Positions 2,441 to 11,935 are shown, numbered from the whole stretch's first letter. The stretch is DNA of 55,620 nucleotides, filler included, from Sluysia triapertura (GCA_046118255.1; 4 parts of 4 records of this genome joined end to end with filler, not necessarily neighbours in it); one strand, 5' to 3'. Numbers and translations are program-made. Notes: generated by a model from the sequence alone, not told the origin.

Positions 2441-2909
2441 TTTATTCTATTATAGTCAATATTACTATCATAATATTACATAACACTTTAGGCCTTTAAC
2501 CCAACAATAGTAATTTATTTTATTCTTATACTACAAACTGCAGCACTCATATCTACTCCAATCTTTGACTAAACCCAACTTAGTCATCATTTAAATTATT
2601 GTTAATACCTTAAAAATTATGTATTACTATTTTAATAATAGCTTCAGTTAGAAATACATTAAGCTTCCATTGATAAAATTTTGATAACGCAAATAAAATC
2701 GCACGATTGATATGATTATTCATTAGTAATTCAGGGTCTATAAAAGCATTCATTCAATTATACTCAAATACTTTGATTATAAGTTTTATGTATATATCAC
2801 TTTTTGTTATTTGGTCCGATTTCATATTTTGGATAAACCTCAAAATCCGAATAAATTTTAAATGAATTAAAAATTTATTTTTAATTAAAAATTGATTATT
2901 ATTAGTTTC

Positions 2910-4817
2910 ATGCCAGTAGAAATTCCAAATTATATAAACAATGAAAGACTTGTTACTGCTGTTCGTCGAAATATAAAATCGTATCTAAGATCTTATTTTA
3001 TCACTTATCCGTTTCATATAAATGATTATTTTTATCATCGAAGTTTCAAACAAGATGCAGGTTTATTTGAAAATGTATTTTTCACTCCAACAATATATAT
3101 TTTAACACCTTTAGGCTATGCTGTTCTTTATGATGCTATTGATTCGTTTAAGACTTTATTGCAAATTGGTGCAAATCCAAATGTGTATTGTTTTGTAGTC
3201 GATTGTCCAGTTGATGATCCAAATAAACGGTGGAAAGTAAATATTTACAGAATTAATGAATTAAAAGCTTGTTGTCTTACGACTCCGAATACTAAAATAT
3301 TTAAGTTATTAATTGAAAGTGGTGTAAAATTCCAAGAAACTTTTGAATTGCACTTTAAAATGATCAATTTAGAAGAAACAAAAGAAACAGTAGAAATAGC
3401 TTATGGAATTTGGGAGTTAGCTTGGCTGTTTTGGTCAAAAATGAAACAACCAGATGTTTTATATACAACAACAAATAATTTACTTGATTGTGGAGCTGAT
3501 GCAACATGTTTGTTGGATAGAGTAAACATGTATGTACTTGTAAACAAAATTTTTCCAAATTGTGAAAATTTTGAAAATTCTAAATTTGCTATAAATTTAA
3601 TAAAATTATTAATGTACAATGGTTGCGATTTTGATAAAACAAAAATGATTGACTCTATTTACGATTGTGTTGCAATATTTTTTAAAAGTCCAACATTAAT
3701 TTTTACTGAAAAAAAAGAAATTATTCAATTTTACGAAACTCTGCAAGGTTTACTCAATTTATCATTAAAATTTCGTAGAATTATTTATAGCAAAGGTTTG
3801 TATTTTAAAAAATTTCCTCATGTGAACATGTACAAATTTAACTCATTAGAACTCGCAGCTTTAAAAGCTGTTCGTAAAACATTAGGTAGTACTTTATTTG
3901 CTAAAAAGTTATCTTCACTGCCTATTGATGAAAAAATTAAAGAAGTTATTCAAAGTTGCATACCAACGACTCAATATGCTAATCAAATACAAAATGAAAC
4001 TCAAAAACATAGTAAAGGTCAGAGTTTAAATAAAACTGAAAAAATTACTTTTAATAAATCTGAAAGTGCAAATATGCCAAGTTCAATATTATCAATCAAT
4101 AAACAAAAGTTAGATTCAGAGGTTTCAATAGATAAAAACGAAAAAATAGAAGATGCAGAAATTTCGAAAGATAGAAACGAAGAAATTAAACAAGAACCCA
4201 GTACGGAAATTTCAAAAGTTGAAAACGAAAATATAAACGACAAATCAACTGCAGAAATTTCGAAAGATCAAAACGAAGGAATAAAACAAGAGACCGATGT
4301 AGAAATCTCTGAAGATAAAAGAGCAAATACAAACGATTATTCACCTGTAAATCAAAGCGAAGAAATTAAGCAAGAACTTGGTTTAGATATTTCAAAAAGT
4401 AAAGAAAAAAACTTTAAAGGAGGATTAAAGGAATTAAGCGAAAATATTCAACAAAAAGCACGTACTGATGTTTCTAAAGATGAAGAAGATAATATCAAAA
4501 AAGAATCAATTATAGAAATTTCAAAAGACGAAAACAAGGATTCTCAACAAGTAACTGATACAGAAATGACAAGTAAAGGAAATGTAACAGAAGAACTTAT
4601 AGATGCGAGAAAAAATATCAAAAAAGAATCAATTACAGAAATTTCAAAAGATGCAAACAAGGATTTTCAACAAGTAACTAATACAGAAATGACAAGTAAA
4701 GGAAATGTTACAGAAGAACTTATAGATACGAGAGAAAATATTAAACAAGATGTTATTAAAAATGCAAATGAAAATATAAAAGCAGGTGGAATAAATTTCA
4801 AAAATGAAAACGAATAA
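2910..4817 (+). CDS. Ankyrin-repeat and SOCS-box (ASB-like) protein with long acidic/Lys-rich repetitive C-terminal tail
   Basis: Uninterrupted ORF, first ATG at 2910 (635 aa). Ankyrin motif TPLGYAVLYDAIDSFKTLLQIGANPN at ~3105-3182, plus degenerate repeats FKLLIESGV, LLDCGAD and LIKLLMYNGCDFD. SOCS-box-like SLELAALKAVRKTLG...LSSLPIDEKIKEVI at 3843-3950. A TTAG just upstream of the ATG could be a splice acceptor, so a 5' exon is possible. Confidence 0.8.
   Translation: MPVEIPNYINNERLVTAVRRNIKSYLRSYFITYPFHINDYFYHRSFKQDAGLFENVFFTPTIYILTPLGYAVLYDAIDSFKTLLQIGANPNVYCFVVDCPVDDPNKRWKVNIYRINELKACCLTTPNTKIFKLLIESGVKFQETFELHFKMINLEETKETVEIAYGIWELAWLFWSKMKQPDVLYTTTNNLLDCGADATCLLDRVNMYVLVNKIFPNCENFENSKFAINLIKLLMYNGCDFDKTKMIDSIYDCVAIFFKSPTLIFTEKKEIIQFYETLQGLLNLSLKFRRIIYSKGLYFKKFPHVNMYKFNSLELAALKAVRKTLGSTLFAKKLSSLPIDEKIKEVIQSCIPTTQYANQIQNETQKHSKGQSLNKTEKITFNKSESANMPSSILSINKQKLDSEVSIDKNEKIEDAEISKDRNEEIKQEPSTEISKVENENINDKSTAEISKDQNEGIKQETDVEISEDKRANTNDYSPVNQSEEIKQELGLDISKSKEKNFKGGLKELSENIQQKARTDVSKDEEDNIKKESIIEISKDENKDSQQVTDTEMTSKGNVTEELIDARKNIKKESITEISKDANKDFQQVTNTEMTSKGNVTEELIDTRENIKQDVIKNANENIKAGGINFKNENE
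4491..4736 (+). repeat. Coding tandem duplication, 2 x 123 bp (41 aa), inside the ASB-like tail
   Basis: NIKKESIIEISKDENKDSQQVTDTEMTSKGNVTEELIDARK vs NIKKESITEISKDANKDFQQVTNTEMTSKGNVTEELIDTRE; copies start at 4491 and 4614. Confidence 0.95.
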
Positions 4818-4916: not shown

Positions 4917-4923
4917 TATAAAT
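4917..4923 (+). promoter_or_regulatory. Candidate TATA box for the Cys-ladder gene
   Basis: TATAAAT about 50 bp upstream of ATG 4971; AATAAA at 5475 follows the stop. Weak evidence because the DNA is so AT-rich. Confidence 0.3.
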
Positions 4924-4970
4924 ATGTACCTACTCAATGTATTTATATATTTTACTTACAAGTTAATAAA

Positions 4971-5438
4971 ATGAAAATAGCAAACCAAATAAAGGTATAT
5001 TTGGAAATAATTTCAATAATTATTTTATTTTACATTGATAAAACTGAATCTGGATCTGCATGTACTTATGAATTACAATTAACATCAAAAATGTGCGATT
5101 CAAGAATAAAAAATATTAACTTTCGTTGCCGTGATTACTACAAAAAATTAGATACAGTTTGCAATCCATTCATGGAGAGTGATAGGAATAATTGCAATCA
5201 ATTACGACATCAAATCGATCGTTTGTGTTATAATGATGCGAACTCCAAATCATGTGCCAATGCTTACGAAAAAGCAAATCAATTATGTGCGCGAGTACAA
5301 AAAAGTTTAGATGAAAGATGCGGTAAAAAATATTCAGCAGTTGATCATTATTGTGGCAAAGCATATCAAAATTTTGGTAGAAGTTGCAACAAAATATATG
5401 AAAATCATAATCGTTACTGTTCAAATGATGAAGAATGA
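4971..5438 (+). CDS. Putative secreted 155-aa cysteine-ladder protein (12 Cys, 11-residue periodicity)
   Basis: ATG in AAAATGA context. Signal-peptide-like N-terminus MKIANQIKVYLEIISIIILFYIDKTES. Cys spacing 10,10,10,10,10,8,10,10,10,10,10. No stops; polyA signal at 5475. Confidence 0.85.
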   Translation: MKIANQIKVYLEIISIIILFYIDKTESGSACTYELQLTSKMCDSRIKNINFRCRDYYKKLDTVCNPFMESDRNNCNQLRHQIDRLCYNDANSKSCANAYEKANQLCARVQKSLDERCGKKYSAVDHYCGKAYQNFGRSCNKIYENHNRYCSNDEE

Positions 5439-7201
5439 AACATTTAATGTATTTGAATTCAAACGAACAATTTTAATAAAATTGAGTTGAAATAATATTT
5501 TAAATGACAAATTTTTTAAACAGCTTGAATGATTACTTTATTTAATGAAAGTATTATTTTCGAAGTATGTTTTTTTGTATGCTTGTTTTTTGTGCCAGAT
5601 ATATAAAATAGAATTTAATAATAGCGAATAATTCGTCCTGCATTAAATAATAGTATTTTATTCAGGACAATGTATAAAGTAAACAGATTATTACTGATAA
5701 TATTTTTTAAAATAGTTTCTTTATTTAAATATTTTCTATAAATATCTTAAAAGTTTGTTTAAGAACTTCATAAAATTGTAAAAATGTTGCACATATATTG
5801 TGGAAAATGATTTAAAAATAAAACCATTTTAAATAAAATTATATTGCACTTTAAAATATCTAAATATCTACGAACTTAAGTAGCATCTGTAGAAACACCT
5901 TTAAATAACAAGGCGGATGCAAATAAAGTATGAAAAAACCGCTTGAAAGTGAACAATAACAGACACAACAAATATTAACTAGCAAGACAGATATAAATAA
6001 AGTACATTGTGCAGTGGTTCAAAATCAAACTTACAATTTTGTTATATGAGTTCAAATAAACAATATAAATGACAAAGTAAACGTTTTACATATTTTCAAT
6101 CTTTAGCATACATCTTTCAATCAATTGCATCAAGTACAAAACTATTACACTCAATATAACTTCAGCTTCGAAATACATTAGAAACAACCTCGTCGTCATC
6201 TTATTCTTAAGACAAAATAATTTTTAGCAGAATTCGGTTACAGTATACGATTTACAACGTGTAATTATTTTAACTATTAATTTCCTAACCTACGTATATT
6301 GATTTGAGGGTCTAATCTTATTTTTATGTAAATGTTATTATTCGGTGATATAAGTTGCACAGAATGTTTATTCATGATGTTGAATTAATGTAATTTGAGT
6401 TTTTAACCCGGAGTTAACTTATTTCAATTAATTTACAAAGTGGCACTTCAATTTTTCGTGAAAATATCTTAAAGAAAATTTATACAAAGAATTAAGATAC
6501 ATTAGAAATAAGTTCTCAAAGCAATATATAATAATTTCTTAGTTTCATGTTTTAGTTAAAATTTTTCCCCTCATTAAATCGGGATAAGGAAGTTTTATTT
6601 AAAAATGATTTTACGAACTTAACATTAATAAACTTACTAATTTTCTGATAAAATTTTTTCGATACAATTTTTTTAAAAATGTTGAAAAATTTTGTAGCGC
6701 GATTCAACTTAACCAATCACACTCAATTAGATTTTTCTATTTTACCAGAAAATTCTGGAAAATTTTCTTTCGAAAATTTATGATTTAAAAGGGCTGTGAC
6801 GCAATCTTATGTTTATATTGTTGGGATTGTCCAGTTAGTGTATATAAAATAGGTTAAAAGGTAAGAGAATTTAAAATACATATAAGAAAAAGTGATATAA
6901 AATATCTGAAATATGATAATATATAGAGTTACATTTTTATTATCAGTATTAAAAATGAAAGGCTTTAATGAAAATTTAATGGCTACACATTTGTATTTAA
7001 ATATTTACAAATTTTATTAATATTAAGAGACATAATTTGTTGAATATTTATTTAAAACATTTATAAAAAAACAAAAATTTTTCTTTCATAGTTTCTTGAA
7101 CATGCTATTTTTTCTATTTCGAAGAGTTCTATAAATAAAATTATCAAATTATAAAAATCAAAGTCGATAATGATGACATATTTAAAAAAGATAATATTTA
7201 C

Positions 7202-7772
7202 TCTACGAAAGTCTTCATTGAAGAAACACAATGATCCAGATAATCTCTCTTTGAACTGATCATACAGTGAACAAGATGACTTTTCTTCATACTTTACATA
7301 GATCTGCATGAGCTCGTTCAATCCATGTGAGTATGGACAAAGATCTGCATATTTCGCACATTGACCTGATACTGTGGTTTGATACGGACAAGATTCAAGT
7401 TCGTACATGTAAAATTGTTAACTTGGTCATGAGATGATAAGAATCCAAAATTCGAATTAAGTATGTTTGGAGCATCATTATAATTGTTCATATCATTCTT
7501 TATAATATTTGTAAACAATTTAGATTCAATTTGATACCTTTCACGTTTATTTGTTTTCGAAGCGAATTCATCATAGAGATTTTTAGATAAAAATTTCTTT
7601 AAAATATTTTGTGAAATTGTGTTACGAGGTAACTTTTTATTATTCTGATTTTTAATAAATCATTGAACTTAGTTTCATCATAATCATTTGGCGTGAATTT
7701 AGTAGACATTTAAAAATTCGGATAATTGTTTAAATCTGGAAAACTGATACTTTTCATTGATTTTGAGAATGT
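7202..7772 (-). pseudogene. Frameshifted exon(s) encoding an Unkempt-type CCCH zinc finger
   Basis: YELESCPYQTTVSGQCAKYADLCPYSHGLNEL has C-x9-C-x6-C-x3-H spacing, as I recall for the third Unkempt finger (YKTGICIHETDSKGNCTKNGLHCAFAHGPHDL). Acceptor ttttatgtag ends at 7773 and donor GTAAAT starts at 7201. At least two frameshifts lie upstream of the finger. Confidence 0.6.
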
Positions 7773-11213: not shown

Positions 11214-11935
11214 CAGCGTGGCCAAAAGTAGATTTGCAGTTATCATGTAAATTATTTATTTGAAAATTCGACACTAGAACAGCGGAAAAATCGTTATACC
11301 TGTTAACATAAACGTAAACATAAACAATTTAATCTCTCAGATGCTCAAAATATCCCCCTTCAACATTGCAACATTCTTTAAATCTCTCCATGACACTCTG
11401 ACATAGTGCAGCATAAATTCCGTTCTTCATCAATTTCTGCGAATGCGAGATGAATGTTTTGGGTTTCCTCTCATAAACCGTGTTCTTAAAAAAGAAATCC
11501 ATAGGTGTCAGGTTAGGTGAACGTGGTAGCCATTCGATGCTGCCCTTCTTCCGAACCAGCGCTATGGAAAAACTTGGTTAATGTAGTCTCTTACTATAGA
11601 CGCATATGTGGTGGTACTCCATCCTGCTGAAAGAAAAGTTCGTCAAAGTTAAGTTTAGTTTAGTACTACTTAATGAAGCATGTCCAGGTAGTTCTATCAA
11701 TTTACAGTTACATTAAAAATGCGGACCCAACAACACCTTCTCTTGATAATGCACCCAACCTGTAATTCGAGGCTGGTATAGTCGTGTGGATTTCCTTGGA
11801 CTGTTCACAAATGCTATAGTCACTAACATTTCATTTTCTTCGGTCTCAGAGTTTGTTTCATCAAATTTATTCCTTAGACGATAAATTGTTTGTCGTGAAG
11901 GTGGAGAAATGTTAAAATTTCATCAAACTATCCAT
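11214..11935 (-). mobile_element. Internally deleted Tc1/mariner-superfamily transposon (DDxD, maT/DUF4817-type)
   Basis: Minus strand reads PPSRQTIYRLRNKFDET (HTH region), FFQQDGVPPH, VRDYINQVFP*RWFGR, IEWLPRSPNLTPMDFF, VYERKPKT and ECCNVEGGYFEHL. One terminus TA|CAGCGTGGCCAAAAGT at 11212-11229. Confidence 0.9.

Follow-up and report, generated by a model that had tools for sequence, protein, structure and literature searches.

A putatively secreted twelve-cysteine ladder protein as a candidate for a new family of disulfide-stapled helical hairpins

One open frame in the 55,620-nucleotide stretch of Sluysia triapertura DNA analysed here (the window) encodes a protein in which six cysteines follow each other at intervals of exactly 11 residues, a short linker intervenes, and six more cysteines follow at the same interval. 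The locus raises three questions: whether the pattern belongs to a real gene, what such a chain would fold into, and whether anything like it has been described. The reading that we favour, with a probability of about 0.7, is that an intact intronless gene encodes a secreted hendecad hairpin closed by six nested disulfides, which acts as an extracellular scaffold or coat and belongs to a lineage-restricted family.

Translation of positions 4971–5438 of the window (plus strand) gave 155 codons without a stop, followed by TGA, and the assigned start is the first ATG within a longer stop-to-stop frame (Table 1). At the base composition of this region (25% GC, with A 0.43 and T 0.32), the probability of 155 stop-free codons by chance is ∼1e-7, and that of 12 given positions all being Cys codons is ∼2e-21. 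The cysteines are residues 31, 42, 53, 64, 75, 86, 95, 106, 117, 128, 139 and 150, with none besides, giving five steps of 11 residues, one of 9 (C-YNDANSKS-C) and five more of 11; the preliminary description had reported two sets of six cysteines 11 apart, joined by a C-x8-C linker, and this spacing is exact. The stretch was found in a single public run and in no RNA run; this run is not on record as RNA and is probably the source of the assembly. Its contigs match positions 5007–5840 with zero differences. The cysteine pattern recurs in register in ∼10 other genes of the same genome and is thus not a product of chance, and the ladder gene is real and intact. No 33-bp tandem repeat is left inside the gene at the DNA level, from which it follows that the hendecad units are old.

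Table 1. Features of the ladder gene in the window (nucleotide positions from its first letter) and contigs that carry other members of the family
Feature	Position or contig	Strand	Basis or remark
Ladder protein precursor CDS, single exon, complete	4971..5438	+	ORF in 25% GC DNA; run contigs agree
Signal-peptide-like N-terminus, residues 1-27 (MKIANQIK basic, core 11-22 hydrophobic, DKTES polar)	4971..5051	+	Hydropathy; paralogues alike
Arm 1, Cys1-Cys6, residues 31-86, five exact hendecads, predicted helix 1	5061..5228	+	Sequence; AF2 model
Linker YNDANSKS, Cys6 to Cys7, predicted turn	5229..5252	+	Mature residues 59-65 non-helical in AF2
Arm 2, Cys7-Cys12, residues 95-150, five exact hendecads, predicted helix 2	5253..5420	+	Sequence; AF2 model
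C-terminal tail SNDEE, short, acidic	5421..5435	+	Translation
AATAAA hexamer, 37 nt past the stop, possible polyadenylation signal	5475..5480	+	Hexamer common in AT-rich DNA
TATAAA hexamer, 49 nt 5' of the ATG, possible TATA box	4917..4922	+	Hexamer common in AT-rich DNA
Intact paralogues	C65463, C190207, C29765, C118273, C73733, C183531, C193068, C203717
Two-exon paralogues (L012, L005)	C259292, C261853
Decayed copies, same subtype as the window gene	C205526, C209719, C92832		In-frame TAA stops

The N-terminus has the appearance of a signal peptide, as had been proposed: residues 11–22 are the sole hydrophobic stretch of the protein (12-residue Kyte-Doolittle mean of 2.65, against −0.15 or less elsewhere), and a similar segment is present in all paralogues. 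In the ladder protein a Glu lies inside this hydrophobic region. The predicted mature chain (128 aa, residues ∼28–155; ∼15 kDa) is basic, with a pI of 8.6, and has no N-glycosylation sequon. In mature numbering the cysteines occupy positions 4, 15, 26, 37, 48 and 59 of the first arm and 68, 79, 90, 101, 112 and 123 of the second. Each mirror pair, first with last and so inwards, sums to 127, so that all six pairs can be in register together in an antiparallel hairpin. The two arms are 21% identical when aligned in register.

To find relatives, we queried the assembly (619 Mb in 263,945 contigs, with the ladder gene on contig C201819) first with the ladder protein and next with a profile of six members. 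Long open frames are sparse, which marks the genome as eukaryotic. The family comprises ∼11 genes and three decayed copies in the same genome. The paralogues are only 14–25% identical to the ladder protein, with their cysteines aligned in register; the profile scores the window gene, itself part of the profile, at E = 5e-49, and members outside the profile at 8e-16 to 7e-7. The full 6+6 cysteine pattern around a linker of 5–10 residues, preceded by a signal-like start, is found in the window protein and in L006, L011, L010, L012 and L005, and reduced versions of the ladder in L025, L019, L027, L030, L026 and P0002, the last from outside this genome (below). All full-length members have a hydrophobic N-terminal segment (12-residue hydropathy of 2.2–3.6) and no second such segment. 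The two-exon members L012 and L005 have a canonical GT...AG intron (∼66 and ∼96 nt, respectively) between C7 and C8, and its removal, with the exons examined singly, leaves exactly 10 residues between these cysteines. The decayed copies are the nearest relatives of the ladder gene in the genome, matching its 3' half and flank at 76–86% nucleotide identity; with these three pseudogene remnants, the family shows a birth-and-death pattern.

Some members carry additions to the ladder. L006 (C65463, 583–2004, minus strand) is 474 aa long and continues after its 12-Cys ladder with ∼300 residues rich in Pro, Thr and Lys; this tail is mucin-like, with runs such as TTTTKKP, and is missing from the close paralogues on C190207 and C29765. 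Another paralogue has a Lys/Pro-rich tail. In the subfamily formed by L010 (C118273) and L019 (C73733) there is a conserved C-terminal motif, C-E-x-x-L-D-P-Y-x-W, and extra cysteines occur as C-D-C after C3 (L010), C-E-C at C1 (L019) and C-N-x-A-C after C8 (both). In each of these proteins, a simple hairpin would leave the two extra cysteines unopposed, which counts among the exceptions to the nested pairing considered below.

The repeat unit itself was characterized from 87 C-x10 units taken from the family, whose consensus is C-D-[RK]-x-Y-x-[KR]-[LI]-D-x-x. Position a is Cys in 100% of units, position e is hydrophobic in 78% (Tyr in 39/87) and position h in 85% (Leu or Ile in 52/87), and the window gene retains all 12 cysteines together with this a/e/h core. 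Positions c, d, f, g, j and k have low information (0.5–0.75 bits), and the exposed positions are 52–77% polar, with no amphipathic hydrophobic outer face. On these sequence statistics, a, e and h make up the core of an 11/3 (hendecad) coiled coil. With its 11-residue core periodicity and modelled helices of 53 and 58 residues (below), the ladder protein falls into the hendecad coiled coils, a structural class and not a homologous family. Asp is the commonest residue at position b, directly after the Cys (30/87), and at position i, directly after the Leu or Ile of h (36/87). These two positions flank one side of the core and form an acidic seam along the predicted helix interface, which could be a stripe for binding cations or a partner.

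The assembly is mixed, and any stretch taken from it needs a check of its origin. Searched for COX1, it yielded three vertebrate-type copies (L036–L038, on C219470, C200653 and C192378) with ∼46% GC and one very divergent copy (L039) on the 23% GC contig C243991. The vertebrate-type copies are host contamination or nuclear mitochondrial copies, and may be teleost-like, given their resemblance to fish barcode translations. Set against the vertebrate protein, the copy on C243991 has AAA at conserved Asn (6/13), ATA at Ile/Val and TGA for Trp, which is the codon use of the flatworm/echinoderm mitochondrial code. All family loci have 24–28% GC (28% for the window) and match this AT-rich component, which speaks for a flatworm origin of the ladder gene; we read the assembly as that of a parasitic flatworm with AT-rich DNA, to which DNA of its vertebrate host has been added. 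An arthropod origin was rejected, as members of the R&R cuticle family and of the insect odorant-receptor family were not found in the genome, in searches run without a positive control.

Outside this genome, relatives are few. A phmmer search of 1.84 billion representative proteins returned two matches at E = 6.5e-5, of which one, a Gly/Cys repeat protein, was dismissed as unrelated. The other, P0002, is a 141-aa protein from the Logan assembly of run SRR33002330; it sits on a contig of 39% GC, which indicates a different organism. P0002 is 28% identical to the paralogue on C183531 (E = 2e-18) and has the same reduced cysteine pattern; it is a true, if distant, homologue. Word-indexed homologue searches with the ladder protein, the six-member alignment and P0002 gave nothing new; the alignment search missed P0002, a row of its own query, so blanks in these searches are weak evidence.

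No confident match to a described family was obtained with Pfam, the PDB, the ESM Atlas or the 1.84 billion proteins, in keeping with the statement in the preliminary description that the family was not recognized. Pfam gave nothing above threshold for the ladder protein, and its CHCH-type models had no match at E ≤ 1 in the ladder protein and seven relatives. The profile search of the PDB returned chance-level rows only (E ≥ 0.2, influenza HA2 helices), and feature searches of the ESM Atlas with the ladder protein and L010 yielded no usable match. Literature searches on CX10C hairpins, hendecad proteins with cysteines, ladders of disulfides or cysteines, and secreted Cys-rich families of monogeneans turned up no such protein. 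The Colipase-like model PF15083, the one Pfam family to come near its threshold, reached E = 2e-5 over residues 87–151, and we take this to be noise from the cysteine spacing: the score of 25.1 bits is below the curated cut-off of 27, the paralogues score 11–12 bits or not at all, and the predicted model is all-helical, whereas colipase, like the ladder protein Cys-rich and secreted, is built of beta-rich disulfide fingers.

Searches by DNA or residue pattern were hampered by satellites. Tandem satellites of 33 bp are abundant on C2565, C190, C16134, C26339, C29649, C34006, C37563 and C59753; when translated they mimic an 11-residue cysteine ladder, and they swamp pattern searches for the family. 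The pattern TGY-N30 repeated five times had 422 matches in the genome and 244 in the reversed control, and because of the satellites this census is unusable as a count. In public metagenome contigs, a pattern that also specified the Asp and a hydrophobic position yielded no family member among 80 of at least 120 matching loci; in these 80, all ladder-like stretches were near-identical 33-bp tandem repeats.

We used AF2 to predict the fold. A single-sequence run produced a poor all-helical model (pLDDT 46), which was superseded by modelling of the mature 128 aa as a single chain with a 12-row paralogue alignment. The five models of this run have pLDDT values of 90–92.7, the best (pLDDT 92.7, pTM 0.72) having helices at mature residues 6–58 and 66–123 and its sole break at 59–65, the C6–C7 linker. 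These models strongly support the predicted long two-helix hairpin with a turn at that linker, and thus the long antiparallel two-helix rod that had been proposed from the cysteine spacing. Structural searches, also suggested there, returned long antiparallel coiled-coil hairpins only, among them the receptor domain of colicins E2 and E3, the p85 iSH2 region, SMC arms, PspA, IpaB and FliJ; the highest Z is 10.3 and the highest Atlas TM 0.70. The ten best structural rows have Z of 9–10 over 101–126 aligned residues; since Z values near 10 are common for long helices and identity is 2–12%, these scores reflect a generic architecture and lie below the level that is specific for helical proteins. 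The matches thus confirm the predicted hairpin shape and identify no relative.

AF2 does not model oxidation; further evidence for how the cysteines pair comes from the reduced members of the family. Written as arm 1 / linker / arm 2, the numbers of residues between successive cysteines are 10,10,10,10,10 / 8 / 10,10,10,10,10 in the window protein, 9,10,10,10,10 / 10 / 10,10,10,10,10 in L006 and L011, 10,21,10 / 7 / 10,21,10 in L026, 10,10,21 / 7 / 21,10,10,11 in P0002 and L027, and 10,10,19 / 6 / 21,10,10,9 in L030; the C1–C2 gap is 10 residues in the window protein against the family's usual 9. L026 lacks C1, C4, C9 and C12, which are two mirror pairs, an outcome with a chance of 15/495 = 0.03 for four random losses. 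L027, P0002 and L030 lack C5 and C8, where any loss of two cysteines would be a mirror pair with a chance of 1/11, and the loss in these three genes may be a single ancestral event. Other losses are unpaired: L025 has lost C9 alone, its codon TCC being a single base away from TGC; L019 has lost C6 alone, with AGT in place of TGT, again a single-base difference; and in the group of L027, P0002 and L030 C1 is gone and C12 is kept, leaving an odd number of cysteines. There are thus about three mirrored loss events against three unpaired ones.

The mirror losses and the palindromic gaps are consistent with nested pairing of the type C(i)–C(13−i), whereas sequential (C1–C2 and so on) or parallel (Ci–Ci+6) pairing would predict none of the loss patterns. 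The spacing argues in the same direction: the C6–C7 gap varies between 5, 6, 7, 8 and 10 residues while the within-arm gaps are fixed at 10, which is what a laddered hairpin tolerates. The one internal deviation in L030 (19 instead of 21) falls at a missing rung. Both the family comparison and the model favour the predicted nested connectivity running from C6–C7 to C1–C12. Of the nested disulfides put forward in the preliminary description, the rungs C5–C8, C4–C9 and C1–C12 gain from mirrored losses; the unpaired losses in L025, L019 and the L027/P0002/L030 group run against the nested rule.

The linker also bears on whether the ladder closes within one chain or between chains. Its variable length (5, 6, 7, 8 or 10 residues) and its Gly/Asn/Ser/Pro-rich composition are tolerable in a turn; in a continuous helix that pairs with a second chain, they would shift the cysteine stripes onto differing faces across paralogues. 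The model has a confident turn and packed arms (pTM 0.72), although only a single chain was supplied, and canonical members have an even count of 12 cysteines. For these reasons we consider it unlikely that the ladder cysteines are mainly intermolecular and join antiparallel dimers or polymers into a cross-linked material with a structural role, for example in eggshells, adhesives, sclerites or a cyst matrix. Such a material would nevertheless account for several observations: an antiparallel homodimer gives the same mirror-pair covariation as a hairpin, the odd cysteine counts of several paralogues are typical of intermolecular links, one paralogue has a mucin-like tail and another a Lys/Pro-rich one, and conserved Tyr, which serves flatworm sclerotized materials, is abundant in the units.

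On the single-chain hairpin reading, the N-terminal signal peptide would bring the precursor into the secretory pathway by import into the ER. Cys (a), Tyr or another hydrophobic residue (e) and Leu or Ile (h) would form one stripe along each helix of ∼55 residues, and the two helices would fold back at the C6–C7 linker into an antiparallel, nearly straight coiled-coil hairpin, a rod of ∼8 nm (55 residues × 1.5 Å). In the oxidizing ER the cysteines of arm 1 would pair in nested fashion with those of arm 2, giving a six-rung alpha-helical cystine ladder. The core is kept across the ∼11 paralogues, and c, d, f, g, j and k, the positions that would be exposed, vary freely. A very stable, protease-resistant extracellular rod of this kind might serve the parasite as a scaffold for binding or coating, on its surface or where it meets the host. 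This role is speculative and argued by analogy; an extracellular scaffold or coat fits best because of the conserved core, the free exposed positions, the birth-and-death pattern, the basic pI and the mucin-like tail of L006.

The same fold might instead serve a toxin, an antimicrobial or a membrane-active effector and not an inert scaffold or coat. Short Cys-stabilized alpha-hairpins of scorpions and plants are toxins or antimicrobials, and the ladder protein, being small, secreted, basic (pI 8.6), disulfide-rich and fast-diverging, has the usual hallmarks of effector and defence peptides; at 128 residues, however, it is far above the known alpha-hairpin toxins in size, its exposed positions are polar as described above, without an amphipathic hydrophobic outer face, and Pfam, the 1.84 billion proteins and the PDB gave no similarity to a toxin family, so that we regard such an activity as improbable. 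That the family is real and the window copy a silent or decaying one, an unexpressed recent duplicate without current function, would suit its nearest relatives (C205526, C209719 and C92832, fragments with in-frame TAA at 76–86% nucleotide identity) and its unusual C1–C2 gap of 10, yet is very improbable for an intact frame of 155 codons (chance ∼1e-7) that retains all 12 cysteines and the a/e/h core and has AATAAA 3' of its stop.

How far the proposed secreted hairpin departs from known systems can be judged by comparison with its closest counterparts. CHCH or twin CX9C proteins (Cox17, Mia40 substrates, CHCHD4, and COA6 with CX9C-CX10C) share the helix-turn-helix, the nested antiparallel interhelical disulfides and the cysteines placed on one helix face at a spacing of about three helical turns. 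They have two disulfides, nine intervening residues and arms of ∼15 residues, where the ladder protein would have six disulfides, ten residues and arms of ∼55; they also lack a signal peptide and are oxidized by Mia40 in the mitochondrial intermembrane space, whereas the signal-like segment of the ladder protein points to the ER. The ladder protein differs from this class in its gaps of 10 and not 9, its 6+6 and not 2+2 cysteines, and its N-terminal signal-like segment. Plant alpha-hairpinins, vicilin-buried peptides, the scorpion kappa-hefutoxin type and the small Tim twin CX3C proteins are likewise helical hairpins with nested disulfides, and those of plants and venoms are secreted, as predicted here. 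These CX3C hairpins have two rungs in 25–50 residues and no repeat periodicity, in contrast to the five-unit hendecad array in each arm of the ladder protein. The window protein lacks any CX3C, and the lone CxxxC of L010 and of L019 involves an extra cysteine outside the ladder.

Hendecad coiled coils of the tetrabrachion type share the 11-residue periodicity, and the a/e/h positions of the ladder fall within their classical a/d/e/h core; this periodicity implies nearly straight or slightly right-handed helix pairs. The known hendecads are parallel oligomers or amphipathic lipid-binding helices without core cysteines, whereas in the ladder protein position a is always Cys and the partner helix would be antiparallel and part of the same chain. 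The cystine ladder of the theta-defensins has parallel disulfide rungs across two antiparallel segments and extreme stability, as would be the case here, with three rungs between beta-strands of an 18-residue cyclic peptide in place of six between alpha-helices of a protein of ∼120 residues. The colicin E2/E3 receptor-binding domain, PI3K p85 iSH2, SMC arms, PspA and IpaB have the same overall shape as the model; all except those of the colicins are parts of larger proteins, cytoplasmic or bacterial, and we know of no disulfide ladder in any of these hairpins. To our knowledge, disulfide-stabilized helical hairpins have been known only in short, two-rung form (CHCH, CX3C and alpha-hairpinins).

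Set against these systems, nested disulfides that lock a helix-turn-helix, the hendecad register and a beta-structured cystine ladder are all known already; what is new are the six predicted rungs, the arms of ∼55 residues in exact hendecad register and a lineage-specific multigene family whose products are probably targeted to the ER. We rate the ladder protein as a new protein family and a new form of the disulfide-stabilized helical hairpin. For the larger claim, that it is the first natural alpha-helical cystine ladder, a new secreted family restricted to a flatworm lineage and a hyperstable, surface-variable scaffold between host and parasite, we would put the odds slightly better than even. 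If true, a natural six-rung hairpin of ∼8 nm would show the reach of the disulfide-stapling principle and would offer protein designers a rigid, probably protease- and heat-resistant rod whose exposed positions accept almost any residue. For parasitology it would be a lineage-specific, diversifying secreted family in a little-studied flatworm, of a kind that often supplies excretory/secretory antigens or components of the surface coat. That the family was missed by Pfam, by PDB sequence searches and by searches of 1.84 billion proteins speaks for the value of pattern-based reading of raw genomes.

Several features of the surrounding DNA were recorded. Upstream, a distance of 153 nt separates the ladder ATG from the end of a 641-codon open frame (2892–4817, plus strand). 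Ankyrin matches near residues 72–98 of this frame are weak and sub-threshold, and repeats rich in Glu, Lys and Ser (ISKD.NKD ... TSKGNVTEELID) make up its C-terminal third. Since part of this repeat region lies next to the 3' half of the ladder gene in the degenerate copy on C92832, a joint duplication of the two genes is probable. The pyrimidine-rich sequence TTTTACTTACAAG (4949–4962, plus strand), with AG at its end, lies 8 nt before the ATG and is like a 3' splice acceptor; together with the short gap to the upstream frame on the same strand, it could mark a 5'-UTR intron or a spliced-leader trans-splice site, spliced-leader trans-splicing being used by flatworms.

Two open frames on the minus strand had no Pfam match at E ≤ 0.01; by eye, that at 354–656 resembles an N-terminal fragment of a non-LTR reverse transcriptase, and that at 11332–11577, with the motif ...PRSPNLTPMDFF..., the C-terminus of a transposase of the Tc1/mariner type. 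An open frame at 7064–7417 (minus strand) matches the UNK-like CCCH zinc finger PF25427 with E = 1.9e-5 and 24.9 bits, against a cut-off of 31.1, and is probably an exon of a neighbouring gene. Just downstream of the ladder gene, at 5764–6068, contig depth, summed over the source run, goes up from ∼15–20 to 200–500, with many loose ends and joints; this segment is a dispersed repeat.
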